DNA from: Malacoraja senta
Lineage: Eukaryota
NCBI GenBank assembly: GCA_038087875.1
Contig: CM075985.1
Coordinates: forward strand, 18,848,001-18,912,000
DNA length: 64,000 nt
Direction of reading: 5' to 3'
The position numbers and the translations under genes are program-made. The notes under the pieces were generated by a model. That model made no database searches. It saw nothing but the letters and a program-made list of their open reading frames with translations, and was not told where the DNA came from. Of the stretch, positions 3,850 through 53,593 are shown one piece after another (positions within the stretch are counted from its first letter, which is position 1; every line of letters begins with the position of its first letter).

Positions 3850-4088
3850 AGTCAGAGGGTGGTGAATCTATGGATTTCTTTGCCACAGAAGGCGGTGGAG
3901 ACCAAGTCAATGGATATTTTTAAGGCAGAGATTGATAGATTCTTGAGTAATATGGGTGTCAGGGGTTATGGGGAGAAGGCAGGAGAATGGAGTTGAGAGG
4001 GAAAGATAGATCAGCCATGATTGAATGGCATAGTAGACTTGATGGGCTGAATGGCCTCATTCTGCTCCTAGAACTTATGATCTTATAA
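3850..4088 (+). mobile_element. CR1 3' end fragment (similar at 26390-26620, 61098-61235, 30316-30450; older CR1 pieces at ~5120-5610, 7575-7870, 18100-18370, 32215-32465, 46680-47070)
   Basis: CAGAGGGTGGTGAATC…GATCAGCCATGATTGAATGG…GGGCTGAATGGCCT CR1 3' UTR. Confidence 0.75.
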
Positions 4089-6944
4089 AGATTCCACCTA
4101 CTGCAGCCTCTTGGATCTCTGGGCACCTATCCCCTGGACTGCAATCCTGCAGTCAATTCCTCCAGACCCACTATTCCCCACTTGATCATATAATATTTGT
4201 CCAAGAGCATACAATCCAAAGTTTTCTCAATACTGAGGTCAGTAGTCTGTATGCTGTCTCTTCCACTGCACATGCTTCCTGCTCTTACTACGAGGAGCAA
4301 GAAGATGTCACTCTAACCTGCAGCCTACATTCAATATCACGTGAGTACTGCCTGCACTGGCAGGTGCAAAGCACTGTGTCGAAGTGCCCTTTCTTCCTGG
4401 CTATATAACTCCAGCTTTCGCATGGCAGTGTCGTGTTCACCTCATGCTCCTGGTCTGCTATCCTGTTTCCACGTCCACATTGCAGGATTTTAACAGTTCA
4501 AGGTCCATATCATTTGCATTTGCTTTTGACTTGAAGCCAACTCTTTTGAAATCAGGTCACAGAGCTCAGAAATCATTTACACCTCAGTTACCTTGAACGG
4601 GAGTAAGGTTTAGTGGGAACATTCTGATTACTGTATCTCAGGAGTAGATAGTCACAAGAAATAAACTGGATTTAAATAATCCTTTGTCTTGAGTACTATA
4701 CGTAAAAAGGCATCCACTCATTTTGTTTTCATTTATGATATATTAATATGAGGCCAACATTTATTGTTAGTCTTTAATTTCACTTGGAGAGGTAGTGGTG
4801 AGCTGCATTCTTGAACCATAGCGGTTTGTGGAGAAGGCAATCTCAGGGCGCTGAGAGGTTGAACATTCCAGCACATTGACCTAGCAACTCTGAAGCTGTG
4901 GCACCGGGTGTCCAAGTATCTAAGTTGATTTGAAGAGAAACTTGGACATGTCCCAGGGTGATACAGTTGACCGCAGATGTTGGAATTATTGAGCAAAAAT
5001 TAAAGTGCTCTTGGAACTCAGGCAGCATCTGTGGAGGGAATGGACAGATGATGTTTCAAGTCAGGACTCTTTTTCAGACTGTTGAAGGGTCCCAACCCAA
5101 AACGGTGTCTATCCATTCTCGAATCAAAGTCATACAGCGTGGAACAATTTGCCTCCAGACCCATTATTCCCCACTTGATCATATAATATTTGTCCACAAG
5201 TGTTGCACAATTTGCCCACACTGACCAACATGTCCCATCTACAGTAGTCCCACCTGTCTGCGTTTGGCCCATATCCCTCCAAACCTATTCTATAGGTTAG
5301 GCCCAACTCATCCATGCCAACCTAGAGGCCCCATCTAAGATAGTCCGATTAGCCTGTATTTGACACAGATCGCTCTAAATCTATCCTATCCATGTACCTG
5401 TCTAATGTTTCTTAAATGTTGCAATAGTTCCTGCCTCAACTACCTCCTCCGGCAGCTCATTCCATACATCCACCACACTTTGTGTAAGAAAATGTTAACC
5501 CTCAGGTTCCTATTAATCTTTCACCTCTCACCTTAAATCTATGTCCTCTAGTTCTTGATTCCCCTACTTTGGGCAAGAGTATGTGATCTCTTCCTCTCAT
5601 GTTTGTGTACACCTAAACATACTTTTCTCCACACGACCTGATGGGATTTATCCGATTCTCCCCTAGATTCTGCCTCACCCATTGAGTTCCTCTGCATTTT
5701 TCTCGGATGTGCCCCAACTGACATTTTTTTGTAATAGAGATTGTTAAGTTAGGAGCATTGGCCTTGATGGTTTAGTGCAAATCAAATTGGTGCAAATCAT
5801 CTCTAAGTAATAGATACTGAATATAGTGGAAGTTGGTAGATGGGATGCTAAACAATCAGGCTTTCTATTCAAGGTAATATTGATATTCTTGAATCTGGCT
5901 GATCTAGGGAAGTTGAGAGTATCACCCTGATGTTCTCTGTAGAAATGGAAAGGCTTAGAAAGAAGTAAAGAAGTGATGTCCGGTCTTGCTGCATACAGTC
6001 ATGGAACTCCTAATTTTCTCAGAAGGACTGAGATGATTGGCCGACAACATATACAAATCTAGGTCATGAAGAGTATGACCCCATTGGCTTTAATTTTACT
6101 GGGCTTCTTGATGTTGCATTTAGTCAAATATTGCCTTGATGTTTCAGACAATCAATTTCACTTCCTATCTGGAGTTCCCTCTTTTGTCCAAGTTTGGACT
6201 GAGGCTATATGTGGACTGGAGCTCAGTGACTCTGATGAAGCATGATCAGCATGTTGAGGAGTAAATACCCATTGGTGAACACTTGATCACCTCATTGATT
6301 ACTTTGCTGAAGAACGCTTCAGTGAATAAGTCAATGATGACTTGAAGCTCACATTCACATGCTCACCAACCCAACTCCCACCTGCAATGTTGACCCAACT
6401 AATTGGAACTGATTCAAATGTTAATCACTGCAGTGACTACTTGGGGACAAGTTCTGTCAGAAGAAAGCTGTTCAATCAGAATTTGTCTCATTACACAATA
6501 AAGCACAATTTACACTTCCTAAATGATCTGATAACAACTTGACTTGTTAAGTAATGGCCAAGAATGTTAATCTTGATGTGGACAGAGGAAAATAAATTAA
6601 ACAATTCACTGAAATTGCATCAGAACATCAACCTGAAATGTTAATTCCACAGATAAACTAAAAATGCTGGAGTAACTCAGCAGGGCAGGCAGCATTTCTG
6701 GATAGAAGCATCTGCAGTTCCTTCCTCCACATGACTCTCCACAGAGGCTGTCTGACCTGCAAAACATTGCCAGCATTTTGAGTGGCTTCATATTTCTATC
6801 ATCAGTAGGTTTTGTTTTGTTCCTGAGTTGAAATTGCAAGATTGTTCTGATTCTGAAAAGCATTTTAACACTGGTTGTTGGGCCCTAAGTGTATCCTCTG
6901 TGCAATCAACAACCTGAGCAAATATTAAACTATCATTTGATATT

Positions 6945-12469: not shown

Positions 12470-14976
12470 GTTATAACAATGCAAATGAGGGAGAAAAAAA
12501 GACACAAAATGTTGGAGTAACTTGGTATCTCTGGAGAACATGGGTAAGTGATGGGTCGGGACCTTTCTTCAGACTAATTGTGGTGTGGTGGGGGGGTGAA
12601 AGCTGGAAGAAAGGAGGGCAGGACAAAGCTTGGTGAGTGATAGGTGGATATAGGTGAGGGGGAATAATAGGCAGATGGTTGGCCAAAGGCCAGAGATGAA
12701 AATACAAAAGGTGTGGCACAAAGATAGAAGAGGTTTGAATTCTGAAGCCAGGGAAAGGAATATAGGTGGAAGAGAAGGGGTGCAATGTATACAAGTCCGG
12801 GTGGGACTCAGGGAATGGAGGGAGGGAGGAGGAAAACAAAGGGTTGTTTCTAGGTTAGTTACCCAAAATTGGAGAATTCAATGTTCATACAGTTAGATTG
12901 TAAGCTATTTCTTCCAGCTTTCTCTCCCCCACCCCACCACCCCACCACAATCAGTCTGAAGAAGAATCTCAACCCCAAACCTCCCCTTTCCAAGTCTCCA
13001 GAGATGCTGCCTGACCTGCTGAGCTACTCCAGCACTTTGTGTCTCCTTTTTTCTAGATCAGCATCAGACTAAGGAAGGGTCTCAACCCGTAACGTTACCC
13101 ATTCCTTCTCTCCAGAGATGCTGCCTGTCCTGCCGAGTTACTCCAGCTTTTTGTGTCTATCTGCAGTTCCTTATGTCTACATTTTGACAGAAATGAAGAG
13201 GCAGGTTTTACACTTCATTCTACACAGACCATTGCACTTCAGCTGAATAGCTTCATATCACAACCTGGTAATTTGATATCCAATGTACAGTATTGTCAGA
13301 AGATTATTTACTGGCATTGTTTATGAATGTCAAGATCCTGGATGTCATTGGTCTGATGATGTGGAATAAAAATACAAAGTCCTTGTAAATCTAGTTCTTA
13401 GAAACTGGAATTTAGATACAGCTAAAGCCTGGTAAATGCCTTAATCTCTCCTTAAGCAATACAGTATATCCACCCTTATTTATGGGTTCAGAAGCTAAAT
13501 TACTGAACCTTCGCTGCTGACTTTATACAAATACATAATATCTAATAAAACACAGACCTCACTATAAAGCAGCCCTGTGGGTGACAAGGCAGGTCTCCAC
13601 CAATAAAATTACTGCTTACTTCAAAGGCATTCAATAATTAAATTCAATTTTTCTACAGATTTTCGGCATAACCTATTACTCAGCTTCATGGTGAATGTCC
13701 ACTGAATAAGGACAATTTGAGTATCAGCAAAGACACAAAATGCTGGAGTAACCCAGCGGGTCAGGCAGCATCTCTGGAGAAAAAGAACAGGTGAGGTTTC
13801 GGGGCGGGGCACTTCTTCAGACTTACGTATCAGGAAACTGTTTTTTTTTTGTAGAATCAAGGAACTGCAGATGCTGTTTTACAAAAGAAGACACAGAGTG
13901 TTGGAGTAGCTCAGCGGGTCAGGCAGCATCTTAGGCGAACATAGACAGGCAACATTTTGAATAGGGAAGATAGTTCTATATCTTTTGTTCTACCTGTATT
14001 TCTCTCTACATTACCGTCTATATCTCTCGTTTCCCTCTCCCCTGATTCTCAGTCTGAAGAAGGGACTTGACCCAAAATGTCACCTGTTCCTTTTCTCCAG
14101 AGATGCAGTCTGACCGGCTGAGTTACTTCAGCTTTTTGTGTCTATCTTTGGTTTAAACCAGCATCTGCAGTTCCTTCCTACACTATTTGAATAGGGATCT
14201 GGAAAGCTGGAAGAGAGCTGGGGCAGGTCAAAGGCTGACAGGTAATAGGCTGACAGGTGAGGAGGGCTATTTGATAATGATTGTAGTGGCGGGAGAGTGG
14301 TGGGTGACGGGGGGGGGGGAGGGAGGAAGGGGCAGGAGCAAGAAATCTGGTAGACAGGAGGGGCAGGAGAAAGCCTGGCAGGTAATGATTATGAGGGGTG
14401 GGGGTGGGACAAAAAAAGATGGAAGACAGGAGGGGCAGGATAAAGCCTGGCAGAATAATTTTTGTGATCCGTTAATCATTAACAGTGCATTTTACATTGT
14501 TGTTTCATTATAGATTGAAGTCATTTCCTGCACTCTTTTATTGTTAGATCAGGCATTAACATTATGAAGGAACAGCTTCCCTTGGGCTTTAACGACAGGA
14601 ACAAATGGACATTACTGGATGCTGGAGGTGCAAAATTACAGAAAGATCATCTGTGTCCCTGATGTATAATTTTCACAAAACACAGAGGGAATAAAGTACT
14701 TTGTATTTTATAATGAAAAGCGGTTACAAGGTATATTCAGCCACGGAAGTATTTCTAGTTCATTACAAAGTTAAATAAGGACTGAATTATTGAATAATAA
14801 CTGTTGCTGACCTCTTGCTCTGCTTATCACTCATTGAGAAAGCAAAGTTAAAATCAATCATGAAGCACAAAAGGAAGTGTGGCCAGCGGCTGAGCTGATT
14901 CAAAGAGCATTTCAGGGAGGTTAGGGACTTCCTTTCATCCATTCCTGCCCTCCAGTCCCTAACTCCTTCACAACTT

Positions 14977-16700: not shown

Positions 16701-17030
16701 AACACTGACTTTTCTAACTTCAAGTAACCCTTGCTTTCCCCCTATCTCCATCCCTCCCCCTTCCCAGTTCTCCAACCAGTCTGACTGTCTCCATTTTACC
16801 TCTGTTTGCTTTGTTGTTACCTTCTCCAGCTAACGATGATCTATTCTACATTTTCCTTGATCTCCATCCCCTTTGTCCTGGTTTCACACCTTACACACTT
16901 CCTTATCTATGTATCTCCCTCTCCCCTGACATCAGTCTGAAGAAGGGTCTCGACCAGAAATGTCACCCATTCCTTCTCTCCAGAGATGCTGCCTGTCCCG
17001 CTGAGTTACTCCAGAATTTTGCATCTATTT
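16701..17030 (+). mobile_element. Penelope-like 3' UTR/pLTR insertion with 14-bp TSD
   Basis: AAGATAAATGAGTG at 16687-16700 and 17031-17044; CTGAAGAAGGGTCTCGACC core. Confidence 0.8.
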
Positions 17031-17816: not shown

Positions 17817-18616
17817 ACACCTTCAAGTGTCACATGCTAGTGAGAGTGTGGGACAGGCAACATGTCTGGAGAGAAGGAATGGGTGATGTTTCAGGTCGAG
17901 ACCCTTCTTCAGTCTTGAAATGTCACCCATTCCTCCTATCCAGAGATGCTGCCTATCCGCTGAGTTACTCCAGCATTTTGTGTCTATCTTCAGTGTAAAC
18001 CAGCAGCTGCAGTTCCTTCCTACACATGATATATGCATTTGGCCAGATCAGGGATAGTCAGCATGGCTTTGTGTTTGGAAAAGGGCGCCTCATTCCCCCT
18101 CTAAAACTTGAGTACATAGGTTTAAGGTGCAATGGAAAGATTTCTAAGTGAACTAAAGGGTAATGTTTTGACACAGAGGGTGGTGCATACATGGAACAAG
18201 CTGCCTGGAGAAGTGGTGGAATTGCAAAGTTTAAAAGACACGGCAGGTACATTGATAGGAAAGATTTTGTGATATATGGAGCAAGCCCAGCAAGTGGGAT
18301 TAGATCAAACGGGCAACTAGGTCGGCATTGACGTTGATCTGGACGGCCTGTATAACTTTTTGACTCTATGGCTATGTGTGCCTGTGGTTTCAAGAGGTTC
18401 TTCTATTGTATGGATGCTGGACGTCCATTAAAACTTACTGCTATACAGGAATAACCACGCTGTAAACTGATATAAACTGTTTCAGTTCTCAACGAAATGT
18501 TTACGTTATGGCTTGCCAAACTAGAATATTAATGCCCTCTGAATTATTCTATTGCTTCATACCATTCACTGTACATAAAGCAGGAAAATGTGAACAATCT
18601 TTGGATGAAAGTCTTT

Positions 18617-21600
18617 AAGAAGGAACTGCAGATGCTGGAAAATCGAAGGTACACAAAAATGCTGGAGAAACTCAGCAGGTGCAGCAGCATCTATGGAGCG
18701 AAGGAAATAGGCAACGTTTAGGGCCGAAACCTTTCTTCAGACTGATGGGGGGTGGGGAGAAGAAAGGAAAAAGGCGGAGGAGGAGCCCGAGGGCTGAGGG
18801 ATGGGAGGAGACAGCCCGAGGGCTGAGGAAGGGGAGGAGACAGCAAGGGCTAACAGAATTGGGAGAATTCAATGTTCATGCCCCCAGGATGTAGACTGCC
18901 CAAGCGGAAAATGAGGTGCTGTTCCTCCAATTTCCAGTGTTGCTCGCTCTGGCCATGGAGGAGACCCAGGACAGAGAGATCGGATACGGAATGGGAGGGG
19001 GAGTTGAAGTGCTGAGCCACCGGGAGGTCAGGTTGGTTATTGCGGACTGAGCGGAGGTGTTCGGCGAAACGATCGCCAAGCCTCCGCTTGGTCTCACCGA
19101 TGTAGATCAGCTGATATCTAGAGCAGCGGATGCAATAGATGAGGTTGGAGGAGATGCAGGTGAACCTCTGTCGCACCTGGAACGACTGCTTAGGTCCTTG
19201 AATGGAGTCGAGGGGGGAGGTGAAGGGACAAGTGTTGCATCTCTTGCGGTTGCAAGGGAAAGTGCCCGGGGAGGGGGTGGTACGGGAGGGAAGGGAAGAA
19301 TTGACAAGGCAGTTACGGAGGGAGCGGTCTTTGCGGAAGGCAGACATGGGGGGAGATGGGTAGATGTGGCGAGTGGTGGGGTCACGTTGGAGGTGGCGAA
19401 ACTGACGGAGGATTACTTGTTGTATGTGACGGCTGGTGGGGTGAAAGGTGAGGACTAGGGGGACCCTGCCCTTGTTGCGAGTGGGGGATGGGGCGAGAGA
19501 GCAGTGTTGCGGTGTATGGAAGATACCCTGGTGTGAGCCTCATCTATGGTGGAGGAGGGGAACCCCCGTTCCATGAAGAATGAGGACATTTCAGATGCCC
19601 TGGTGTGGAACGCCTCATCCTGGGAGCAGATACAGCATAGACGGAGGAATTGGGAGTAGGGGAAGCAGGGTAGGAAGAAGTGTAGTCCAGATAGCCATGG
19701 GAGTCTGTAGGTTTATAGTGGATGTCGGTCTGAAGTCCATCACCTGCGATGGAGATAGTGAGGTCAAGGAATGGTAGGGAAGTGTCGGAAATGGTCCAGG
19801 TGTATTTGAGTGCCAGATGGAAGTTGGTGGTGAAGTGGATGAAGTCAGTCAGTTGTGTGTGGGTGCAGGAGGTGGCACCAAAGCAGTCGTCGATGTAGCA
19901 GAGGTAGAGGTCGGGGATGGGGCCCTGGTACGGATTGAACAAGGATTGTTCGACGTACCCGATAAAGAGGTAGGTGTAGCTGGGGCCCATACGTGTGCCC
20001 ATAGCTACGCCTTGTATTTGGAGGAAATGGGAGGAGTCAAACGAGAAGTTATTGAGGGTAAGGACCAGCACCGCTAGGCGGAGGAGGGTGTCAGTGGCCG
20101 GGTATAGGTTGCTTCTCTGGTCGATGAAGAACCGGAGGGCTTTGAGACCATCCTGGTGGGGGATGGAGGTGTAGAGTGACTGGACGTCCATGGTGACGTC
20201 ATTGCCACAGACAGCTGTGGAGGCCAAGTCACTGAATATTTTAAAGGGAGAGATTGACTGATTCTTGGTCAGTATGAGTGTCAAGGGTTATTGAGGGATG
20301 GCAGGAGAATGGAGTTGAGAAGGAAAGATAGATCAGCCATGACTGAATGGCGGAGTAGACATGATGAACAAAATGGCCTAATTCTGCTCCGAGAACTTAT
20401 GAATAAAGCCCAAACAGTTCCTCACAGTAGATTTCCCTCACAGCATCTTACCCTTAAAATATCTTTACTAATTAAAATGACTGTATTCATGATGCCAAGA
20501 GACAATGGATCAGTCAAATATCTTATTGCAAAGGTCATATCAGTAACCTGATAGGAGAACGAATGCTGGTTACTATGTTAAATATCTCCGGATTCCTTTT
20601 CTCAAGGCCAGGCATTAGTTACAACAACATCACAGGAAAGCAACGTAAAATGGGCAAGAGATGACAAACTTAAAAAAGGAAATCACAAATTGCCAATCAT
20701 TATTGTTCCCTTCATTATCAGTGCTTGTTGGAATCATTTCAATGCTTGCACTCTGCTTATGTGCAGTGCTTCATGTTTGTTGCGGGTTGCCTTTGAGAAA
20801 TGAGAAATAAATATAAAGCTGGTATCTCTGGTTCCATGTCCCCACCCTCTTACACCAGTAATTTTACAAATTATAAATAATTTACTGTGGTATTGCTCAT
20901 AAATAAAAGATAAGAACTTAACTTTGGGCTGGGTTTTGCAGTAGGGCGGAAGCGATCACAGTCCCTTTGACGTTGACAAAAGCCACTCTTTGGTGACGTC
21001 AGTCGCTATCATGTCACGGGAATCCTGGCACGCAGGTACAGTGACGTCTTCAAGCTGGCTGAGCAGCAAATTCCATTGAAGAATTCTCACAGACAGTAAA
21101 CCAGGATGGAAAAAACAACCTTTAGCCAATACCACAAGTATTTAACATAGTGTCAAGCAAAGATGGGAGTGCACAATCATGGCGATATTCATATTTGCCA
21201 TCTTATTTGGCTGTCACTCTCATTCCCTACATGGTCTTGTATTTTTTTTCTATCAGTTAATTCAACATCTCTTTTCTCCACAAGTTTTCTTTCTCAAAAT
21301 GTCCTCACTATTTTCATCTTTCACTATCCGATGAACACATTTTCTGCATTTCTCTCACTTTCTTTCCATCTGCTCTCTATTGCATCTTACACGTTATTCT
21401 TATCACATTGACTCGAACAATGGTTTGTGACTTGGAATTTCAATAATTCCAAAAGCGTGTTGATCCTATTTGTCCAGAACTATGAAGCAATAAGAAATAG
21501 GTCCTGGAGGGTAGTGAGTATAGGACTGAAGATAGGAGAACTGATTACAATACAAATACAATACAATACAATACGGTTTTATTCGTCACATTGCACGTAA

Positions 21601-22048
21601 AGTGCAAGTGAAATGAATTTACCAGCAGCGGTATAATGATTAAGAACACACAATACACAATAAAAATTTAACACAAACATCCACCACAGCATTCATCACT
21701 GTGGTGGAAGGCACAAAATTTGGCCAGTCCTCCTCCATTATCCCCCGTGGTCGGGACCTCAACCCTCCTCAACCGTCGCTGCGGGCATCCAGATGAGTGA
21801 AAGAGAATGGAATGCGCGGAGACGACGGAGAGTGTCTGAGGTGTCTTGAACATAGGTAGGGAGGGATTTAACCAAGGGGGATAGGATGGAGTCAAGGTTG
21901 GTGGAGATGAATTTGGTGGGGCACGAACAGGCAGAGACAATGGGTCTACCGGGACAGTCAGGTTTGTGGATTTTGGGGAGAAGGTAAAATCGGGCCGTGC
22001 GGGGCTGGGGAACGATGAGGTTGGAGGCTCGGCCGGGCAGGGCGTGGG
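18617..22048 (-). mobile_element. Left arm: Penelope-like RT/GIY-YIG copy, decayed, interrupted by 20197-21801
   Basis: ORFs 19544-20284 and 18850-19347 match the + arm protein. 20196 corresponds to 22698 and 21802 to 22677, so the arm is continuous across the interruption apart from 20 bp. Confidence 0.9.
20199..21803 (+). repeat. 1.6-kb direct duplicate of 26419-28021, inserted in the Penelope left arm
   Basis: ~98% identical by eye; near-identical spurious ORFs 20291/26511 and 21163/27382. Confidence 0.95.
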
Positions 22049-24061
22049 TCTTCTTCCCCCATTGATGACCCCTTTTCCCGTCTCCAACGCACCCCCTCCT
22101 CGTGGAACCCCCCTCGTGGCCTTCCGGCTTTAGAACTCTTTATCAAAAACTGCCGCTGTGACATCAACCGCCTCAACTTCTCCACTTTCCTGTCTCACTC
22201 CAATCTCTCCCCCCCTGAACGTACTGCCATCGACTCACTCCGCAACAACCCAGATTGGGTTATCAAACGCGCCGACAAGGGAGGTGCCGTGGTAGTCTGG
22301 CACGTCGATCTCTACAAAGCTGAGGCCAAGCGCCAACTCTCGGACACCTCCTCCTACTTACCCCTGGACCATGACCCCACTGACGAGCACCAGGCCACCA
22401 TCTCCAGCACCATCACCGACTTCATCAACTCCCACGCCCTGCCCGACCGAGCCTCCAACCTCATCGTTCCCCAGCCCCGCACGGCCCGATTTTACCTTCT
22501 CCCCAAAATCCACAAACCTGACTGTCCCGGTAGACCCATTGTCTCTGCCTGTTCTTGCCCCACCGAACTCATTTCCACCTTCCTTGACTCCATCCTATCC
22601 CCCTTGGTTAAATCCCTCCCTACCTATGTTCAAGACACCTCAGACACTCTCCGTCGACTCCGCGCATTCCATTCTCTAGGCCCTCACCCCCTCATCTTCA
22701 CCATGGACGTCCAGTCACTCTACACCTTGATCCCCCACCAGGATGGTCTCAAAGCCCTCCGGTTCTTCCTCGACCGGAGAAGCAACATATACCCGTCCAC
22801 TGATACTCTCCTCCGCCTAGCGGAGTTGGTCCTTTCCCTCAATAACTTCTCGTTTGACTCCTCCCATTTCCTCCAAATACAAGGTGTAGCTATGGGCACA
22901 TGCATGGGCCCCAGCAACGCCTGCCTCTTTATCGGGTACGTCGAACAATCCTTGTTCAAAACGTACCAGGGCCCCTTCCCCGACCTCTACCTCCGCTACA
23001 TCGATGACTGCTTTGGTGCCACCTCCTGCACCCACACACAACTGACTGACTTCATCCACTTCACCACCAACTTCCATCCGGCACTCAAATACACCTGGAC
23101 CATTTCCGACACTTCCCTACCATTCCTTGACCTCACTATCTCCATCGCAGGTGATAGACTTCTGACCGACATCCACTATAAACCTACTGACTCCCATGGC
23201 TATCTGGACTACACTTCTTCCTACCCTGCTTCCTGTAAGGACTCCATCCCCTACTCCCAATTCCTCCGTCTACGCCTCATCTGCTCCCAGGATGCGGCGT
23301 TCCACACCAGGGCATCTGAAATGTTCTCATTCTTCAGGGAACGGGGGTTCCCCTCCTCCACCATAGATGAGGCTTGCACCAGGGTCTCTTCCATACCCCG
23401 CAACACTGCTCTCTCTCCCCATCCCCCCACTCGCAACAAGGGCAGAGTCCCCCTAGTCCTCACCTGTCACCCCACCAGACGTCACATACAACAAGTAATC
23501 CTCCGTCAGTTTTGCCACCTCCAACGTGACCCCACCACTCGCCACATCTTCCCATTTCCCCCCATGTCTGCCTTCCGCAAAGACCGCTCCCTCCGTAACT
23601 GCCTTGTCAATTCTTCCCTTCCCTCCCGTACGACCCCCTCCCCGGCCACTTTCCCTTGCAACCGCAAGAGTTGCAACACTTGTCCCTTCACCTCTGCCCT
23701 CGACTCCATTCAAGAACCTAAGCAGTCGTTCCAGGTGCGACAGAGGTTCACCTGCATCTCCTCCAACCTCATCTATTGCATCCGCTGCTCTAGATGTCAG
23801 CTGATCTACATCGGTGAGACCAAGCGGAGGCTTGGCGATCGTTTCGCCGAACACCTCCGCTCGGTCCGCAATAACCAACCTGACCTCCCAGTGGCTCAGC
23901 ACTTCAACGATCCCTCCCATTCCATATCCGACCTCTCTATCCTGGGTCTCCTCCATGGCCAGAGCGAGCAACACAGGAAATTGGAGCAACAGCACCTCAT
24001 ATTCCGCTTGGGGAGTCTGCATCCTGGGGGCATTAACATTGAATTCTCCCAATTCTGTTAG
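22049..24061 (+). CDS. Penelope-like element polyprotein: reverse transcriptase + GIY-YIG endonuclease (5'-truncated, 670 codons open; Neptune-like)
   Basis: Frame stays open 80 codons upstream of the tracked 22289 start (…VIKRADKGGAVVV). Motifs: LPKIHK, PGRPIVS, MDVQSLYT, GVAMG, RYIDDCF, Cys linker CNRKSCNTC, LIYCIRC..YIGETKRRLGDRFAEH. Confidence 0.92.
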   Translation, partial: SSSPIDDPFSRLQRTPSSWNPPRGLPALELFIKNCRCDINRLNFSTFLSHSNLSPPERTAIDSLRNNPDWVIKRADKGGAVVVWHVDLYKAEAKRQLSDTSSYLPLDHDPTDEHQATISSTITDFINSHALPDRASNLIVPQPRTARFYLLPKIHKPDCPGRPIVSACSCPTELISTFLDSILSPLVKSLPTYVQDTSDTLRRLRAFHSLGPHPLIFTMDVQSLYTLIPHQDGLKALRFFLDRRSNIYPSTDTLLRLAELVLSLNNFSFDSSHFLQIQGVAMGTCMGPSNACLFIGYVEQSLFKTYQGPFPDLYLRYIDDCFGATSCTHTQLTDFIHFTTNFHPALKYTWTISDTSLPFLDLTISIAGDRLLTDIHYKPTDSHGYLDYTSSYPASCKDSIPYSQFLRLRLICSQDAAFHTRASEMFSFFRERGFPSSTIDEACTRVSSIPRNTALSPHPPTRNKGRVPLVLTCHPTRRHIQQVILRQFCHLQRDPTTRHIFPFPPMSAFRKDRSLRNCLVNSSLPSRTTPSPATFPCNRKSCNTCPFTSALDSIQEPKQSFQVRQRFTCISSNLIYCIRCSRCQLIYIGETKRRLGDRFAEHLRSVRNNQPDLPVAQHFNDPSHSISDLSILGLLHGQSEQHRKLEQQHLIFRLGSLHPGGINIEFSQFC

Positions 24062-24083
24062 CCCTTGCTGTCTCCTCCCCTTC

Positions 24084-24637
24084 ATAGATATACATAGATA
24101 CATAGAAAATAGGTGAAGGAGTAGGCCATTCGGTCCTTCGAGCCTGCACCGCCATTCAATATGATCATGGCTGATCATCCAACTCAGTATCCCGTACCTG
24201 CCTTCTCTCCATACCCCCTGATCCCTTTAGCCACAAGGGCCACATCTAACTCCCTCTTAAATATAGCCAATGAACTGGCCTCAACTACCTTCTGTGGCAG
24301 AGAGTTCCAGAGAATCACCACTCTCTGTGTGAAAACGTTTTTTCTCATCTCGGTCTTAAAGGATTTCCCCCTTATCCTTAAGCTGTGACCCCTTGTCCTG
24401 GACTTCCCCAACATCGGGAACAATCTTCCTGCATCTAGCCTGTCCAACCCCATAAGAATTTTGTAAGTTTCCATAAGATCCCCTCTCAATCTCCTAAATT
24501 CTAGCGAGTATAAGCCGAGTCTATCCAGTCTTTCTTCATATGAAAGTCCTGACATCCCAGGAATCAATCTGGTGAACCTTCTCTGCACTCCCTCTATGGC
24601 TATAATGTCCTTCCTCAGATTTGGAGACTAAAACTGT
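24084..24637 (-). mobile_element. Young CR1 LINE 3' fragment nested in the Penelope right arm
   Basis: ORF 24184-24588 nearly identical to the C-terminus of 61780-62718; (CTATGTAT)n-type tail; Penelope sequence resumes at 24640. Confidence 0.9.
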
Positions 24638-24947
24638 CCCTCAGCCCTCGGGCTGTCTCCTCCCATCCCTCAGCCCTTGGGCTCCTCCTCTGCCTATTTC
24701 CTTTCTTCTCCCCACCCCCCCATCAGTCTGAAGAAGGGTTTCAGCCCGAAAAGTTGCCTATTTCCTTCGCTCCATAGATGCTGCTGCACCCGCTGAGTTT
24801 CTCCAGCATTTTTGTGTACCTTGGATGAAAGTCTTTGGGAACTTCTGCTGACACCAATACATTTCACTTGATCACTTTTTTTTATTTTTTCCTCTTCCTT
24901 GAAGCTAGAGGAATGTCTTCAAGGCAAAAGATCTTTAAAACTTAAGC

Positions 24948-25081
24948 GTGTGGGAAAGAACTGCATACGCTGGTTTAAATCGAATGTAGACACAAAATGC
25001 TGGAGTAACTCAGTGGGACAAGCAGCATCTCTGGAGAGAAGGAATGGGCGATGTTTTAGGTCGAGACCCTTCTTCAGACTG
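24948..25081 (-). mobile_element. 134-bp pLTR mini-element with 10-bp TSD
   Basis: AAACTTAAGC at 24938-24947 and 25082-25091. Confidence 0.8.
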
Positions 25082-25273
25082 AAACTTAAGCACTTGGTGG
25101 GCTTGATCATTTAAAGTACAGTGTTTCCAATTTTCAGTTGACATCAAACCAATTTACTGCCTGCAGGATGTTGTCTTGTATGTTTCCTCCCACACTCTAG
25201 ACATTGGCTCCAAAAAGCCTCTCCAGACTAGAAAGGCCCCATATTTCCATCAAGCATATTTCCATCAGGTTCA

Positions 25274-26096
25274 GTGGGCGGCGCGACTCTCGTCAGCAGC
25301 AGCCTCTGCAGTCGGTCTGTCTTTTCTATGTAGTTTTTGTTGGGGGTTTTTTGTCGGGGTATGTGTGTGGGGGGGTGGGGGCGGGGAACTTTAGGGTCTT
25401 TCCCCTGCACGGGAGACCCGACCTTTTCTTTGTCGGGTCTCCGTTGTCGTTGGGGCTGGGCAACGTGGAGCGGCCTCCAGCAGGAACGACCTGGGGCTCC
25501 AGTTGCGGAGCTGCGGACTACTCACCGTCGCGGGGCTGGCCGAGTCCGGAGCGGGTGGAGCTGTGGTGGAGCGCTGCTGCGACCCGACCCCCGGAGATTC
25601 GGAGGTTACAACCGCGGGTCTGGCGGACGGCAACACCGGAAGCCCGCGGGTCCCTGGTGGGAGACCGCTTTTCGGGGCTTCCGCAGCGGCGACTTCTCCC
25701 ACCCGAGTTGCGGGTTGAGGAGCACCTGGAGCGGGGCTTGGAATGGCCGCGGGACTTTGCGAGCGCGCACCGGGGCTCTAACACCAAGACCCGGTGCGCG
25801 ACCTTGCATCGCCCGGCGTGGCTTTAATGGCCGCGGGATAATCACCATCGCCCGCCGGGGGCTTTGACTTTGACTTTGACTCTGACATCGGAGGGGGGAG
25901 TGCAGTGGAGAGATAAGGTTTTTTTTGCCTTCCATCACAGCGCTGTGATGGATGTATGTGTAAATTGTGTTGTGTCTCGGGTCTTTTTCATTTTGCAATG
26001 TATGGCTGCAGAAACGACATTTCGTTTGGACCTCAACGGGGTCCAAATGACAAATAAATTGTATTGTATTGTATTGTATTGTATTGTATTGTATTG
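25274..26096 (+). mobile_element. GC-rich ~830-bp non-coding retroposon (LINE-tail dependent), copy 1
   Basis: 5' GTGGGCGGCGCG…CTGCAGTC, two 3' hairpins, AATAAA, (TTGTA)n tail; homologous copies elsewhere in the window. Confidence 0.75.
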
Positions 26097-26418
26097 CATG
26101 CAGCACTGCTCCCGTTGTGGAAAGGGTAAAGATCATGCTGCCCAACTATTTTCACGTCTTGGGCATTTTAAAGCAACTATCTATATTCTGGCCACAGTAA
26201 AAAACATTTCCTATTTCTAAAGGTACTAAAACAGTTCCACAACAGAAACAGAAGTAAATAAAATTGTCTTGAAGGCTATGTCCTCTCCCTTGTAGAATTA
26301 AGCATGAGTGTACCAACAAGATGTGAAATTCTTGATCGATCTAGTCTCTATCCCACAGCGCAGAAGGCATAATTCTGCATAAAGTTTATTTAGTCAGAGG
26401 GTGGTAAATCTGTGGAAT

Positions 26419-28021
26419 TCATTGCCACAATCAGCTGTGGAGGCCAAGTCACTGAATATTTTAAAGGCAGAGATTGACTGATTCTTGGTCAGTATGGGTG
26501 TCAAGGGTTATTGGGGGATGGCAGGAGAATGGAGTTGAGAAGGAAAGATAGATCAGCCATGACTGAATGGCGGAGTAGACTTGATGAACAAAATGGCCTA
26601 ATTCTGCTCCGAGAATTTATGAATAAAGCCCAAACAGTTCTTCACAGTAGATTTCCCTCACAGCATCTTACCCTTAAAATATCGTTACTAAATAAAATGA
26701 CTGTATTCATGATGGCAAGAGACAATGGATCAGTGCAATATCTTATTGCAAAGGTCATATCAGTAACCTGATAGGAGAACGAACGCTGGTTACTAGGTTA
26801 AATATCTCCGGAATCCTTTTCTCAAGGCCAGGCACTAGTTACAACAACATCAAGGAAATCAACGAAAAATGGGCAAGAGATGACAAACTTAAAAAAGGAA
26901 ATCACAAATTGCCAATCATTATTGTTCCCTTCATTATCAGTGCTTGTTGGAATCATTTCAATGCTTGCACTCTGCTTATGTGCAGTGCTTCATGTTTGTA
27001 GCGGGTTGCCTTAGAGAAATGAGAAATAAATGTATAGCTGGTATCTGTGGTTCCATGTCCCCACCCTCTTACACCAGTAATTTTACAAATTATAAATAAT
27101 TTACTGTGGCATTGCTCATAAATAAAAGATAAGAACTTAACTTTGGGCTGGGTTTTGCAGTGGGGCGGAAGCGATCACAGTCCCTTTGACGTTGACAAAA
27201 GCCACTCTTTGGTGACGTCAGTCGCTATCATGTCACGGGAATCCTGGCACGCAGGTACAGTGATGTCTTCAAGCTGGCTGAGCAGCAAATTCCATTGAAG
27301 AATTCTCACAGACAGTAAACCAGGATGGAAAAAACAACCTTTAGCCAATACCACAAGTATTTAACATAGTGTCAAGCAAAGATGGGAGTGCACAATCATG
27401 GCGATATTCATATTTGCCATCTTATTTGGCTGTCACTCTCATTCCCTACATGGTCTTGTATTTTTTTTCTATCAGTTAATTCAACATCTCTTTTCTCCAC
27501 AAGTTTTCTTTCTCAAAATGTCCTCACTATTTTCATCTTTCACTATCCGATGAACACATTTTCTGCATTTCTCTCACTTTCTTTCCATCTGCTCTCTATT
27601 GCATCTTACACGTTATTCTTATCACATTGACTCGAACAATGGTTTGTGACTTGGAATTTCAATAATTCCAAAAGCGTGTTGATCCTATTTGTCCAGAACT
27701 AAGAAGCAATAAGAAATAGGTCCTGGAGGGTAGTGAGTATAGGACTGAAGATAGGAGAACTGATTACAATACAAATACAATACAATACAATACGGTTTTA
27801 TTCGTCACATTGCACATAAAGTGCAAGTGAAATGAATTTACCAGCAGCGGTACAATGATAAAGAACACACAATACACAATAAAAATTTACACAAACATCC
27901 ACCACAGCATTCATCACTGTGGTGGAAGGCACAAAATTTGGCCAGTCCTCCTCCATTATCCCCCGTGGTCGGGACCTCAACCCTCCGCAGCCGTCGCTGC
28001 GGGCATCCAGATGAGTGAAAG
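26419..28021 (+). repeat. Donor copy of the 1.6-kb duplication
   Basis: The CR1 tail at its left end and the GC-rich element at its right end continue beyond the duplicated boundaries, marking this as the original. Confidence 0.9.
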
Positions 28022-30235: not shown

Positions 30236-30716
30236 CCTAAGCAAAGTTATATCCAATTTTAGCTCAAATCTCACTCCTTTGTATTTCAGTTCCAATGCAA
30301 CAAAAATAACATCGGAAATAGGTGCAGGAGTAGGCCATTCGGTCCTTTGAACCAGCACCACCATTCAATATGATCATGGCTGATCATCCAGAATCAGTAC
30401 ACCGTTCCTGCTCTCTCCCCATATCCCTTGATTCCGATAGCCCTAAGAGCTACAATATATAGTTTTTCTTATTATGAGCTGTATCGTATTTATTTCTTTG
30501 CAGGGATATGTAGATTTCTCTCTCTGCAGTCCATAACTTCCATCATTTATTTTAGTATTTGTTTTGTAAATCTGTAGAAGATTATCTTATACTTACCCCA
30601 CACTGAACTTTAATTACCAGTTTTTATCAGTAGTGAGATTATTTTGCAATGATTTGGTTCCAACATGACTGATTTTTATGCCACTTATGGACATCAGCAA
30701 ACTTGGATATGAAACA

Positions 30717-30891
30717 TGCGTAGGAAGGAACTGTGTATGCTGGTTTACACCTAAGATAGACACAAATTGCTGGAGTAACTCAATGGGTCAGGCAGCATCT
30801 CTAGAGAAAAGGAATAGGTAACGCATCGGGTCGAGACCCTTCTTCCGAACTGCCTGACCCGCTGAGTTACTCCATCATTTTGTGTCAATCT
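30717..30891. mobile_element. Miniature fold-back pLTR element with 14-bp TSD (1 mismatch)
   Basis: TTGGATAT[G/A]AAACA at 30703-30716 and 30892-30905; inverted arms. Confidence 0.75.
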
Positions 30892-31605
30892 TTGGATATA
30901 AAACACTCTTTCATCATTTGAGTAATTTCTGACCACGGTGAAAAGAAGCCCCTTATGGTTCTTTACCAGTTATATTCTGGCCACCGGATCATGTAACCAC
31001 GAGATCTACAGTATGTGTGCCTCCTACCTAAATAGACCTTTTGCCTTTTCAAAGGTTTAGCTCCAATTCCATACTGTTTCACGTATCTCAACAGTCTCTC
31101 ACCTGGAACTGAGTTAAATGCCTACTGTAAGTTAAAATAAATAACATCCATGGACATAGGCTTAACTACCATGTTAGATATCTCTACAAAATCTCAGCTT
31201 GGTTTGTTAAACATCACTTACTGTTTATTATTGATGGTCTAAACTCCAAAAGAACTCAGTATTCTAGGAGTGCCTTCACCTCCGTGTTATAATTTATGTA
31301 TCATTTGGCTCAGGTCAATGTGACCTTTCACCATCATAGTGAAAGGCACAATAAATACATGGTGGAGCCAATTTAACAGTGGGGAAGAATGTATTTATAG
31401 AATGTAGCATTGACCTTGGGCTATTTTGCCAAGTCACTCTTTGAACGTTGTCTTATTGCTGTTTACACACATTGCAACATGCACATTGCTCCTGATAGAC
31501 AGCGCACAGTAGAGTTGGCATATTTTAAAAGAAAGAGATAAACTGGTTGAGTGATTTGGGAGAGAAATTCCACAAGGCTGGTCAAACAAAGTAGAAGTGT
31601 TCAGA

Positions 31606-31920
31606 TAGATACATAGATACATAGAAAATAGGTGCAGGAGTAGGCCATTCAGCCCTTCGAGCCTGCACCGCCATTCAATATGATCATGGCTGATCATCCA
31701 ACTCAGTATCCCGTACCTGCCTTCTCTCCATACCCCCTAATCCCTTTAGCTACAAGGGCCACATCTAACTCCCTCTTAAATATAGCCATGAACTGGCCTC
31801 AACTACCCTCTGTGGCAGAGAGTTCCAGAGATTCACCACTCTCTGTGTGAAAATGTTTTTTCTCATCTCGGTCTTAAAGGATTTCCCCCTTATCCTTAAG
31901 CTGTGACCCCTTGTCCTGGA
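31606..31920 (-). mobile_element. CR1 3' fragment, same young family
   Basis: Near-identical to 24084-24400. Confidence 0.88.
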
Positions 31921-33037: not shown

Positions 33038-33196
33038 NNNNNNNNNNNNNNNNNNNNNNNNNNNNNNNNNNNNNNNNNNNNNNNNNNNNNNNNNNNNNNN
33101 NNNNNNNNNNNNNNNNNNNNNNNNNNNNNNNNNNNNNNNNNNNNNNNNNNNNNNNNNNNNNNNNNNNNNNNNNNNNNNNNNNNNNNNNNNNNNNNN
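33038..33196. other. Assembly gap (159 N)
   Basis: Run of N flanked by pyrimidine-rich low-complexity sequence. Confidence 1.
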
Positions 33197-48867: not shown

Positions 48868-48905
48868 CAGTCTGAAGAAGGGTCTCGACCCGAAACGTTG
48901 CATAT
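48868..48905 (+). ncRNA. Minimal hammerhead-ribozyme-like motif in a pLTR (representative of many copies)
   Basis: CTGAAGA core, stem II GGGTC-TC-GACCC, GAAA, palindromic AACGTT stem III; Penelope-like pLTRs are known to carry minimal hammerheads. Confidence 0.6.
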
Positions 48906-49339
48906 TTCCTTCTCTCCATAGATGCTGCCTCACCCGCTGAGTTTCTCCAGCATTTTTGTCTACCTACTGCAGAATAAGATGTTGGTAGCAGGTTTGGGAA
49001 ACAGGTGGGCGTGGATCACTGCAGCCAGCAGGTCCGGGGTCTTTTGTACATGAGCATATTTTACATTTGGTGCCCTCCCTCACTCAAATATGTCACCAAG
49101 TCAACATTCGCACTACTGTGTGTGGGAGGTTGGCTATGAACAATGTGTCTGCCATACTTCTTGTATTACTGCAACGATGACACTTAAGAAGTGCCGAAAG
49201 GCACATGAAAGTCAAAAAAAAATGAATGTCGCTGAAAGGAACTCAAATCTGTGATTTAAAATGCTGAAACGGTGCATAATCAAATGTAATCTTACAAAAT
49301 GATTGTTTTTTTTTAAATAAAGCATGAGCTGGATTGGGC

Positions 49340-50756: not shown

Positions 50757-53593
50757 GTACAAGCCCCGGTTCCCCTTGGAACTGTGTGTGTTTTTTAATC
50801 TATATGGAGTGTCGATGTTTAAGTAATCGTTTGGGGAATGCTGCATTGGTCGTAGTGTCTCAATGTTTTGATGCGCTGTGTAGTGTTTGGGGACGGGCTG
50901 CGGTTTGTCATGGGTTGCGTTGTGCCCATCAATTGCACGAGTTCGTCCCGCTTTACGAGTGTGTGTCAAGGGGATTACAATCAAAGTTAATGCGGATTGG
51001 AATTAAAGTTAGAGTTGTTATTTTGCACACTTTTTTAAAGTAAAATGTCGTTGTTTTCCCCCGTTCTACAGTGAAGGAGCGGGAGCCGTTTGAGAAAGTG
51101 TATCAGATCGGGGCAGTGCTGGGCAGCGGCGGCTTCGGCACAGTCTACAGCGGCGTGAGGCTGAGCGACGGGCTCCCGGTGAGTTACTACCCCCGACCTG
51201 CCGCCACACACACACACACACATACATACACACACACATACACATTCCCCGCGACCCCTCTCGACCACCAACTCATCCGCTTTTCCTCTTTTCTTCCAGG
51301 TTGCTGTCAAACATGTGGCCAGAGACCGAGTGACCGAATGGGGCTCGCTGGTGAGTTACCCTTTCCCCCCCAATCCCTCTTTTCACACTTATCGCAGCGA
51401 GGAGCTAAAGTGCGCTGCAATACATCGCTTACAGTGAGCGTTGTCCTCATAATGTTGAGATTGGCGTTTGGATTCTATTCAGTGCGGAGCATCTGTAAAT
51501 TCAGCTTGCTTAGCCTTTGGGAGGAGGGAATGGGGGAATTCTAGTAATTTCGATCTAGAAGGAGAAGGTTGCTGCCAATTTCTTTATTTATAGAAATCAA
51601 AGAGGCAGATGTTGGAAGCAAAGTTTTTTTTTTAAAGGAGTGTTGGGTGCATCCATCACCTACTTTAACGAGGGCTGGCATTTTTTCCCCGTGCAATGAC
51701 ACAAGGACACGTTATGTTTAGGGTGCACGTTGCGGGCCAGTTGGTCGATGCGGGTTTTTTTTTTAACCTGCAGGTTTTACAAGGTATTTATCCATTGCCC
51801 TGGGTTTGGTGTTTTGTAGAACGGCAGCCTGGTGCCCCTCGAGATCGTGCTGCTCAAGAAGGTGGCTGGAGGCTTTCGAGGAGTCATTAAAATGCTGGAC
51901 TGGTACGAGCGGGGTGACAGCTTCTTGTTAATCATGGAGCGGCCGGAACTGGTCAAAGACCTGTTTGATTTTATCACCGAGAAGGGAGCCCTGGAGGAAG
52001 AGCTGGCGCGGGTCTTCTTCAGGCAGGTCCTTGAGGCAGTCCGGCACTGCTACAACTGCGGTGTCGTTCACCGGGACATCAAGGACGAGAACCTCCTGGT
52101 CGACCTGCGCTCCGGCGAGCTCAAACTCATAGACTTCGGGTCGGGGGCGTTGCTCAAGGACACGGTCTACACAGACTTTGATGGTAATGCACTGTTCTGG
52201 GCTTTCCAGTGTGTGTGTGTGTGTGTGTGAGAGACTGCAGTCGGCTTTCCCCTGTATCTGCCTATTTAATGCAATAATTGAGACTCGAGCCGGTTTATGC
52301 ACTCGTTGATTTAAGAAGTTAAAATATAATTGCCTTGTGAACGAACGCCCTTCGCTTTTTGAGGAGTGAATTGTCCCCATCTCAACCCAGCTGGGTCCCC
52401 TCGCTTCTATCCCAGGGTTTATACACCAGGTTTTGGCTCCGGTTAGCGAGCCCAGCAGAAGCGAACCCTGCCACCCGCCCTCCGCCGGGCTGCGCACTGC
52501 TTCCTCCCACCTTGTTGTGAAACTCGAGCCCTCCCCGGGTTAACCCTTGCTGGGGGCTCTGGTTTGTGGCTGGTAGCTCCACCCAGGCGCCCAGCGCTGC
52601 GGCTTCTCGCCCGCTCCCTCCCTCCCTCCCACCAGCCCGCCGCTACTCCCTGCAGCAGACAGCGAGCTCCACCCCGCCCCTGCCTACCCGCTCTTTTTTT
52701 GTTTTCATCCTATTTTACACCCATTTCCAATTTATTTCCTCACCCTCTCTTCTGGTTGGTTTTTTTTTTTTGCATCGTTCTCCGTTTCCCTTCATCCCTC
52801 CCTTTCTCTAGTTTGTTTCTCTCTTGCTGGTTGCCTTTGCATTCGCTTTCCCTGCTGCTGTTACTGCTGCTGCCAGGAATCCCACCATCCGAGGCTTCCT
52901 TACGTTTGTAAACAAAGGAGTCAGCTGACCAGCTGACTGCAGGGAGTTGATCTACAGACTAACCGGGGTCTGTCTCAACATCTGACCAAGATCAGAGGGA
53001 ACTTGTTTCGTAGGATGTGGTCACTTGCCGCGTTTTGTGCCCCACACCCACTTCCAATTCTGCAATGTAATTAGCCTTCTGGCTGCCCCCGGCTTAAATT
53101 CTGTTTATTTATTCTTCACAGGCACAAGAGTGTACAGTCCTCCAGAGTGGATCCGTTACCATAGATACCACGGGAGATCTGCTACTGTGTGGTCTTTGGG
53201 AGTGCTGCTGTATGATATGGTTTGTGGGGATATCCCTTTCGAACAAGATGAAGAGATCTTGCGAGGTCAAGTGTACTTCAGGAGGCGAATTTCTTCTGGT
53301 GAGTGGGATTTCAAGCAAGTGCTGGAGTGTCTTGTAATGTAATGCCTATTTTGGGGCACTTTTTTTTATGCCGATTTCTTAACACTTGTTTACTATGTTT
53401 GTTTTCAGAATGTCAGCATTTGATCAAGTGGTGCCTTGCACTGCGGCCTTCCGAGAGACCCATGCTGGAACAGATCTTTGAACACGCTTGGATGCGAAAG
53501 GCTGAAGTAGTTAAAACCGAGGACTGTGACATCAGGCTGCTGAGCCTAGACCTCGAGACCTCCAGCACAAGTTCGAGCAAGGAGAGTCTGTGA
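50669..53593 (+). CDS. pim3: PIM3 serine/threonine kinase, spliced CDS join(50669..50756,51072..51178,51300..51350,51820..52183,53122..53298,53409..53593), 972 nt, 323 aa
   Basis: Six exons join in frame with GT-AG boundaries. Motifs: GSGGFG loop, VAVK, PIM hinge [26 protein letters not shown]-terminus [38 protein letters not shown] and C-terminus [14 protein letters not shown] match PIM3 rather than PIM1/PIM2. Confidence 0.95.
51072..51178 (+). CDS. pim3: pim3 coding exon 2 (107 nt, glycine-rich loop)
   Basis: Acceptor ttctacag, (V)[35 protein letters not shown], donor GTGAGT. Confidence 0.95.
51205..51244 (+). repeat. (CA)n microsatellite in pim3 intron 2; (GT)n at 52209-52228 in intron 4
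   Basis: Seen directly. Confidence 0.95.
51300..51350 (+). CDS. pim3: pim3 coding exon 3 (51 nt)
   Basis: Pyrimidine tract plus ccag acceptor, [17 protein letters not shown], donor GTGAGT. Confidence 0.95.
51820..52183 (+). CDS. pim3: pim3 coding exon 4 (364 nt, hinge, catalytic loop, DFG)
   Basis: Acceptor ttttgtag, [15 protein letters not shown]...HRDIKDEN...DFGSG...TDFD, donor GTAATG. Confidence 0.95.
53122..53298 (+). CDS. pim3: pim3 coding exon 5 (177 nt)
   Basis: Acceptor ttcacag, [27 protein letters not shown]...RRRISS, donor GTGAGT. Confidence 0.95.
53409..53593 (+). CDS. pim3: pim3 coding exon 6 (185 nt to TGA)
   Basis: Acceptor ttttcag, [18 protein letters not shown]...SSSKESL*. 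Confidence 0.95.

Follow-up and report, generated by a model that had tools for sequence, protein, structure and literature searches.

Penelope-like elements (PLEs) are described as inserting with an inverted 5'-truncated partner, a tail of 30–40 bp at one end and a target site duplication (TSD) (PMC8557442, PMC3846280), and a PLE tail of 31 bp has been reported (PMC3846280). Template jumps by PLEs, and captures of host DNA measuring 0.9–1.5 kb, have also been reported (PMC3846280). In Adineta vaga the captures comprise unique spacers of 0.9–1.5 kb in Pen1 and unrelated sequences lying between the pseudo-long terminal repeats (pLTRs) inside the TSDs, and N-rich inserts were ascribed to template jumps (PMC3846280). 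Among L1 elements, insertions are known with local duplications or inversions that arise from remodelling of the ends before ligation (bioRxiv 10.1101/2024.12.14.628481). Here, a PLE insertion of the fold-back type was analysed in a 64,000-nucleotide stretch of the genome of the cartilaginous fish Malacoraja senta (assembly GCA_038087875.1, contig CM075985.1, positions 18,848,001 to 18,912,000 of the forward strand), referred to below as the window and numbered from its first base. The left arm of this insertion contains 1.6 kb of DNA, for convenience called the cargo, which also occurs a short distance downstream.

The segment is, with high probability, a genuine insertion templated in cis and not the product of transposition, whatever the time at which it was made. 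A sequence-only reading of the stretch had proposed that the segment was inserted from a template during repair of a break, or that reverse transcriptase (RT) had jumped between templates. The core of that proposal, that the segment was copied from neighbouring DNA, is supported by the analysis below, and both mechanisms are still viable.

Results

A copy of downstream DNA lies within one arm of the element

Comparison of the window with itself aligned 20199–21803 with 26419–28021 in direct orientation at 97.8% identity over 1605 columns (33 mismatches, two 1-base gaps, E = 0). The offset between the copies changes from 6220 to 6218 along the alignment. The direct copy placed inside the left arm by the sequence-only reading was thus confirmed to the base. 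The anatomy of the junctions was read from a three-way comparison of the recipient, its mirror arm and the donor. At the left junction (...CCATGGTGA/CG/TCATTGCC...) the element stops at 20196 and the copy, after two bases of filler, opens with TCATTGCC. At the right junction (...GTGAAAG/AGAATGG...) the AG forms the final two bases of the copy and is common to donor and element. The same comparison found no duplication of the recipient site around the insert and no A-run or poly(A) at its end. The extra CG, the 2-bp microhomology, the removal of 20 bp of element (the mirror-arm bases 22678–22697 have no left counterpart) and the lack of both TSD and poly(A) had all been claimed from the sequence alone, and all were borne out. 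No supported open reading frame (ORF) or coding content was found within the segment, and there is no third copy of it in the window.

Between 20193 and 20202 the CG filler completes an 8-bp palindrome, TGACGTCA, which resembles a cAMP response element and spans the left junction. An origin of this palindrome as P nucleotides from hairpin opening was considered and rejected, its centre falling on neither terminus. The motif AGATGAG, common to the surroundings of both junction partners, was not used as a junction. No G-quadruplex was present at the breakpoint on the G-rich strand that was scanned.

The direction of copying was read from the context of the two copies. An old dispersed repeat crosses the left boundary of the downstream copy and continues unbroken for 27 bp outward of it, and the element-internal copy diverges from both the donor and the related repeat at 3850–4080 exactly at TCATTGCC. 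Since the old repeat extends beyond 26419, the downstream copy stands in its native context and is the original, with the element-internal copy derived from it. On this sequence context, copying is shown to run from 26419–28021 to the recipient, whose uninterrupted state is preserved in the opposite (right) arm.

The donor also holds an inverted piece of another old repeat (27765–27936), and its remainder is unique. The description of the segment as host DNA, made in the sequence-only reading, therefore stands in so far as it is a copy of neighbouring DNA, but the wording needs qualification as the segment consists of old repeat fragments mixed with unique sequence. It is also not a transduction of the kind made by retroelements: the extra DNA is internal to its PLE copy, the 3' end being 1580 nt away and the truncated 5' end 245 nt, and it stems from the flank of the present insertion site and not from that of a source copy.

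The recipient is a head-to-head pair of Penelope-like copies

The two PLE copies meet head-to-head at 22048/22049 with their 3' ends outward. They are enclosed by the 16-bp sequence TTGGATGAAAGTCTTT, which is the sole exact direct repeat of at least 13 nt between 18560–18660 and the DNA 0.5–20 kb downstream. The left arm (18642–20196 and 21802–22048) pairs in inverted orientation with 22431–22677, 22698–24083 and 24639–24826 on the right at 94–97% identity. A 31-nt 3' tail, 18617–18647, is found on the left copy only and is absent from the right. What appears as a 382-bp 'loop', 22049–22430, is additional 5' sequence held by the right copy alone, the left copy being truncated at 22048. The left copy is frameshifted, with indels at 18746, 19482 and 19660, the last of 16 bp; these comprise two losses of a single base and one of 16 bp.

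In the right copy an uninterrupted frame of 670 codons extends from 22049 to 24061. It has 1942 homologues, the strongest at E = 1e-226, and among those with names the best belong to sharks and rays (Chiloscyllium, Rhincodon, Mobula, Hypanus). Its alignment covers residues 226–887 of an 889-residue homologue containing RT and GIY-YIG regions, with 52% identity over 664 residues. By this alignment, both PLE copies are missing some 220 N-terminal codons together with the whole of the 5' sequence. The Pfam matches are weak, 22.7 bits for RVT_1 (below the cut-off of 29.6) and 20.2–22.8 bits for GIY-YIG. The GIY-YIG region reads ...LIYCIRCSRCQLIYIGET...AEH...QH..., with cysteines between the two motifs; such cysteines have been described for PLEs (PMC8557442). 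Judged by its RT, its GIY-YIG region and the architecture of the insertion, the element is a canonical EN+ PLE. That the 670-codon frame has stayed open looks like luck and not selection, there being 14 derived amino-acid changes in it and 18 in its frameshifted partner.

A string resembling the CUGANGA...GAAA core of a hammerhead ribozyme is present at 24728–24751 in the right tail and is mutated in the left copy. The resemblance is one of primary sequence, and no Rfam hammerhead model gave a match at its gathering score or at E ≤ 1. Short copies of the 3' tail of the PLE, about 27 in number, are scattered through the window (for example 14049–14141, 16930–17020, 24986–25082, 30760–30848 and 48868–48964). 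Several contain a CTGAAGA...GAAA hammerhead-like core and some form miniature head-to-head pairs. The right PLE copy is itself interrupted by an unrelated 555-bp repeat, whose empty site is visible in the left arm at 18828. This insertion shows no obvious TSD. Other members of the repeat family lie at 30309–30454 and 3853–4070, and old relatives in the opposite orientation form the first ∼200 bp of the donor segment.

Cargo and target site duplications share a 6220-bp register

The spacing of the two TSD copies is 6220 bp, and so is the distance from the first base of the cargo to the first base of the donor. Measured from the TSDs, 1580 nt of element and 2 nt of filler, 1582 in all, separate the end of the left TSD from the start of the copy, and an equal 1582 (24837–26418) separate the end of the right TSD from the start of the donor. 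Both lengths are independent of the length of the cargo and of the later 555-bp insertion. A tandem duplication of 6.2 kb was considered as the source of the equal offsets and was rejected, as only the TSD and the cargo match at an offset of 6218–6220. A pair of repeat-family members at an offset of 6209 (24117–24181 and 30326–30390, ∼84% identical) is at chance level given the approximately 350 repeat pairs in the window.

Age of the cargo relative to the fold-back

The raw divergence between cargo and donor is 2.06% and that between the arms is 4.56%. Of the differences in the ORF shared by the arms, 23 of 73 are synonymous, and the polarised derived amino-acid changes number 14 in the right copy and 18 in the left. 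This symmetrical decay makes the arms usable as a clock, and the changes would fit neutral decay from one starting sequence. The possibility that the arms were unequal at birth is unsupported, as the changes are split 14 to 18 and look neutral.

An initial view that the cargo was half as old as the fold-back (2.1% against 4.6%) was withdrawn once the CpG sites and a near-identical tract of 539 bp had been taken into account. The number of differences expected in this tract (Table 1) was taken from the rate of the remaining cargo. Gene conversion between the copies is the simplest reading of the tract, with constraint as the alternative. Outside it, at non-CpG sites, the divergence is 2.72% for the cargo and 3.50% for the arms (p = 0.31). 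Thus the apparent youth of the cargo stems mostly from the near-identical tract and from CpG content. On these divergences the cargo is either of the same age as the fold-back or somewhat younger, a result that does not separate copying during integration from later repair.

Features and genomic surroundings

The features of the insertion and of its donor are collected in Table 1.

Table 1. Coordinates of the fold-back insertion, the duplicated segment and associated repeats (window numbering)
Feature	Position	Strand	Remarks
Left TSD copy, 16 bp, TTGGATGAAAGTCTTT	18601..18616	.	Spacing 6220 to right TSD copy
Left PLE copy, 3' part (outer arm)	18617..20196	-	Inverted match to 22698-24083 and 24639-24826; GIY-YIG and RT minus-strand matches
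Filler bases CG	20197..20198	.	Matched by neither element nor donor (three-way comparison, alignment)
Inserted 1.6-kb copy of downstream DNA	20199..21803	+	97.8% identical to 26419-28021; no Pfam-supported ORF
Near-identical tract	20944..21482 (donor 27163-27701)	.	539 bp, 1 difference against ∼16 expected; P ∼1.6e-6
Left PLE copy, 5' part (inner arm)	21804..22048	-	Inverted match to 22431-22677, 96.8%; ends at 5' truncation point
Right PLE copy	22049..24083	+	Translation, Pfam matches, homologues
Element bases missing from left copy at insertion point	22678..22697	+	20 nt, no left-arm partner (three-way comparison)
Unrelated 555-bp repeat, inside right PLE copy only	24084..24638	.	95-96% identical to 62265-62810 and 31600-31920
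3' tail of right PLE copy	24639..24820	+	Minimal hammerhead-like core at 24728-24751
Right TSD copy, 16 bp	24821..24836	.	Exact repeat of 18601..18616
Old dispersed repeat crossing donor left boundary 26419	26392..26622	+	85% identical to 3850-4080
Donor (original) 1.6-kb segment	26419..28021	+	Starts 1582 bp past right TSD

The region lies ∼24–30 kb upstream of an exon encoding a Pim-type protein kinase (51832–52230, plus strand). About 6 kb upstream of this exon, the minus strand at 45440–45516 matches the Rfam CPEB3 ribozyme model (RF00622) over its full length, positions 1–78, scoring 42.3 bits where the gathering score is 35, with no RT ORF beside it. The CPEB3 ribozyme family has been described as mammalian and the window is from a cartilaginous fish. 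Four other low-copy local duplications occur in the window (4154–4203/5145–5196, 35197–35296/36921–37019, 47516–47575/48699–48758 and 33253–33298/34344–34389), two of them direct and two inverted, 46–100 bp in length and 89–95% identical. They were considered as further PLE cargo and rejected, none being clearly tied to a PLE insertion.

Discussion

Possible copying during integration

The 1.6-kb copy may have been made during integration of the PLE, a reading that is tentatively and slightly preferred to later repair of a break in the palindrome. The element entered as a head-to-head pair of the usual kind, with the two strands of the staggered 16-bp cut serving as primers for one cDNA each. 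In the left copy, the plus-strand 3' end would quit its RNA template after growing by 1580 nt, pick up two stray bases (CG) and land in the downstream flank of the target, on the bottom strand, which resection of the nicked top strand would leave single-stranded. Having copied 1.6 kb there, it would rejoin the element template 20–22 nt further on at the AG, extend for 245 nt and be joined to the right copy. The timing, the polymerase and the single-stranded state of the donor are all presumed.

The combination of CG filler, 2-bp microhomology and 20-nt skip is the anatomy of a 3' end that departs from a template and later returns to it, and it favours this course of events. So does the location of the donor. 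It starts only 1582 bp downstream of the target nick and is directly oriented, this being one of the two configurations open to a top-strand-primed 3' end when the target DNA has been resected. Only at integration does the target site play a part, and the register match is counted for integration timing, as is the age of the cargo, which at 2.72% against 3.50% is inseparable from that of the fold-back. Further points in favour are the unused mirror arm (see below), the kilobase-scale host captures reported for PLEs and ascribed to template jumps (PMC3846280), and the remodelling of L1 ends ahead of ligation (bioRxiv 10.1101/2024.12.14.628481).

Several observations weigh against copying during integration. 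No feature directly dates the event to integration, and long inverted repeats are known break sites; the junctions fit an origin in a break equally well. The point estimates of divergence place the cargo somewhat younger than the arms, and when all sites outside the near-identical tract are used the values are 3.0% and 4.6% (p = 0.047). The register itself has a chance probability of ∼1e-4 per comparison, which rises to between ∼1e-3 and 1e-2 when alternative landmarks are allowed for, and it may be a coincidence. The CG filler differs from the bases, AT, that the donor side carries at the in-register positions. The match was verified and stands without an explanation; no ruler could be named that would equate the length of a nascent strand with a distance along the target. 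Alignment of a TSD-anchored heterologous tail by a recombinase filament, an empty-site homologue, coupled resection and hairpin symmetry were each weighed as a physical ruler, and none was convincing.

That the register reflects a rule, by which a nick-primed nascent strand switches to the downstream target strand at a distance equal to its own length, is unlikely. If the rule were true, the growing cDNA would be held in alignment with the target duplex, or an empty-site homologue would be used in register, and capture of flanking DNA would be a regular and predictable by-product of PLE integration. One case cannot establish such a rule; its recurrence, if shown, would provide a rare handle on a poorly understood intermediate of PLE integration.

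Alternative origins of the segment

Repair after integration is a substantial possibility. At a point in the left arm 265 bp from its inner edge, a later double-strand break, or the stalling of a fork, would leave a left 3' end that invades ∼4.6 kb downstream via microhomology and copies 1.6 kb in the manner of synthesis-dependent strand annealing (SDSA), break-induced replication mediated by microhomology (MMBIR) or fork stalling and template switching (FoSTeS), after which microhomology-mediated end joining would restore the arm with the loss of 20 bp. As in copying during integration, a plus-strand 3' end that had got as far as 20196 would thus have quit its template, used the bottom strand of 26419–28021 and resumed on the element 20–22 nt later. 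The 2-nt filler, 2-bp microhomology and small deletion are the textbook signature of a templated insertion (PMC8421209), and arms of ∼1.82 kb around a 382-bp spacer, as they were before the insertion, are a breakage-prone kind of structure, with the break falling in the inner 15% of the arm. The divergence of the cargo is also nominally below that of the arms, but this difference in age vanishes when the 539-bp tract and the CpG sites are left out. Repair gives no reason for the exact TSD register or for the side and orientation of the donor. Furthermore, synthesis over a kilobase with only 20 bp of end loss, and with the homologous inverted arm unused, would be unusual for the repair of a break. 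The mirror arm did not serve as the template of a repair, since no patch of arm-to-arm identity lies beside the junctions, the nearest arm-to-arm mismatches being 30 and 18 nt away; repair templated by the other arm was rejected on this ground.

A double switch of the PLE RT, first from the element RNA to a minus-strand transcript of adjacent DNA and then back, would have the same geometry as copying during integration. Movement of RTs from one RNA to another is known, and for PLEs template jumps were proposed (PMC3846280). However, no minus-strand transcript is evident, the nearest evidence of a gene being the plus-strand kinase exon, which lies ∼24 kb further downstream than the donor. Over its 1.6 kb the cargo follows the genome colinearly, without a mark of splicing or poly(A), and an RNA donor would leave the origin in the immediate flank unexplained, so this route is improbable. 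It is still less probable, indeed very unlikely, that a mis-join or a mixing of haplotypes placed a second copy of 26419–28021 in the element during assembly. PLE fold-backs are hard to assemble (PMC8557442) and a gap of Ns is present at 33038–33196, 5 kb past the donor, but there is no gap near either junction. Clean junctions with filler and microhomology, and the resumption of the element after 20 nt, also speak against an artefact. The 33 substitutions and only two one-base indels are non-uniform in distribution and unlike either read error or a duplicated consensus. Least probable of all, to the point of being barely tenable, is that the segment is a mobile element which inserted independently at both sites. 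Its boundaries are, as those of a transposon would be, common to the two copies, but the left boundary of the donor falls inside an older repeat that runs on past it for 27 bp. The segment is made up of unrelated pieces of old repeats interspersed with unique DNA and is therefore not a transposon. It lacks terminal repeats, a TSD, poly(A), a supported ORF and a third copy in the window, and the recipient lost 20 bp and gained no duplication. Transposition was rejected on these grounds.

Consequences of the insertion

The sequence-only reading had stated that the insertion breaks a long inverted repeat, and the coordinates agree with this: where there had been arms of ∼1.82 kb with a 382-bp spacer there are now outer arms of 1555 bp, 2501 bp apart, and inner arms of 245 bp. 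The original inverted repeat was presumably unstable. The insertion has also left 1.6-kb direct repeats 6.2 kb apart, which could mediate deletion. The further claim that the fold-back had acquired cargo holds in that a segment was gained, but not in the sense of a load that can be mobilised. Both PLE copies are 5'-truncated and the interrupted left copy is frameshifted; therefore the segment cannot be carried onward and the cargo is a scar.

Taken singly, the insertion is an ordinary structural scar. Its value is that the donor, the recipient, the direction of copying and both junctions of a templated insertion on the kilobase scale can be read directly, the state of the recipient before the event being kept in the mirror copy. 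With its identified donor, it is a vertebrate addition to the reports of host DNA being picked up by PLEs.

Comparison with known systems

The framework of the insertion is identical to that of canonical EN+ PLEs (Craig et al. 2021, PMC8557442; Arkhipova et al. 2013, PMC3846280), with which it shares strong 5' truncation, a head-to-head inverted partner, a one-ended tail of 31 nt and a TSD; a putative minimal hammerhead-like core in the 3' tail would be a further likeness. The only difference is the internal 1.6-kb segment of non-element DNA in one arm. In having a kilobase of non-element DNA within a PLE unit bounded by a single TSD, the locus resembles the captures in Adineta vaga, for which template switching during replication was proposed. 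It differs from them in that the donor is identified, as the immediate downstream flank of the same insertion, and in that the segment is located within the portion of a dead inverted partner that encodes RT and not between the body and a pLTR. Furthermore, there is no sign here of onward copying of the composite.

Templated insertions of the MMBIR, FoSTeS and SDSA types, the last with template switching (PMC8421209), likewise have a nearby donor in cis which is retained, microhomology of 0–2 bp, a short filler, a small loss at the recipient and no TSD. The present locus shows a retained donor, an established direction of copying, the CG filler, the AG microhomology and the 20-bp loss. It differs in that 1.6 kb is at the long end for such insertions, in that the recipient is a retroelement fold-back and in the TSD register, for which no counterpart was found in that literature. 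The twin priming and local rearrangements of L1 (bioRxiv 10.1101/2024.12.14.628481; PMC2837659) are alike in that both nicked strands prime cDNA to give inverted halves within one TSD, and in that the ends produced by target-primed reverse transcription are remodelled to yield local duplications or inversions. However, the element class and endonuclease differ, and the L1 cases are found at the junction of element and target and are mostly inverted, whereas the copy described here is direct and internal to one arm. The fold-back architecture, the capture of host DNA by PLEs and templated insertions have thus all been described previously, and only the register match would be new in kind.

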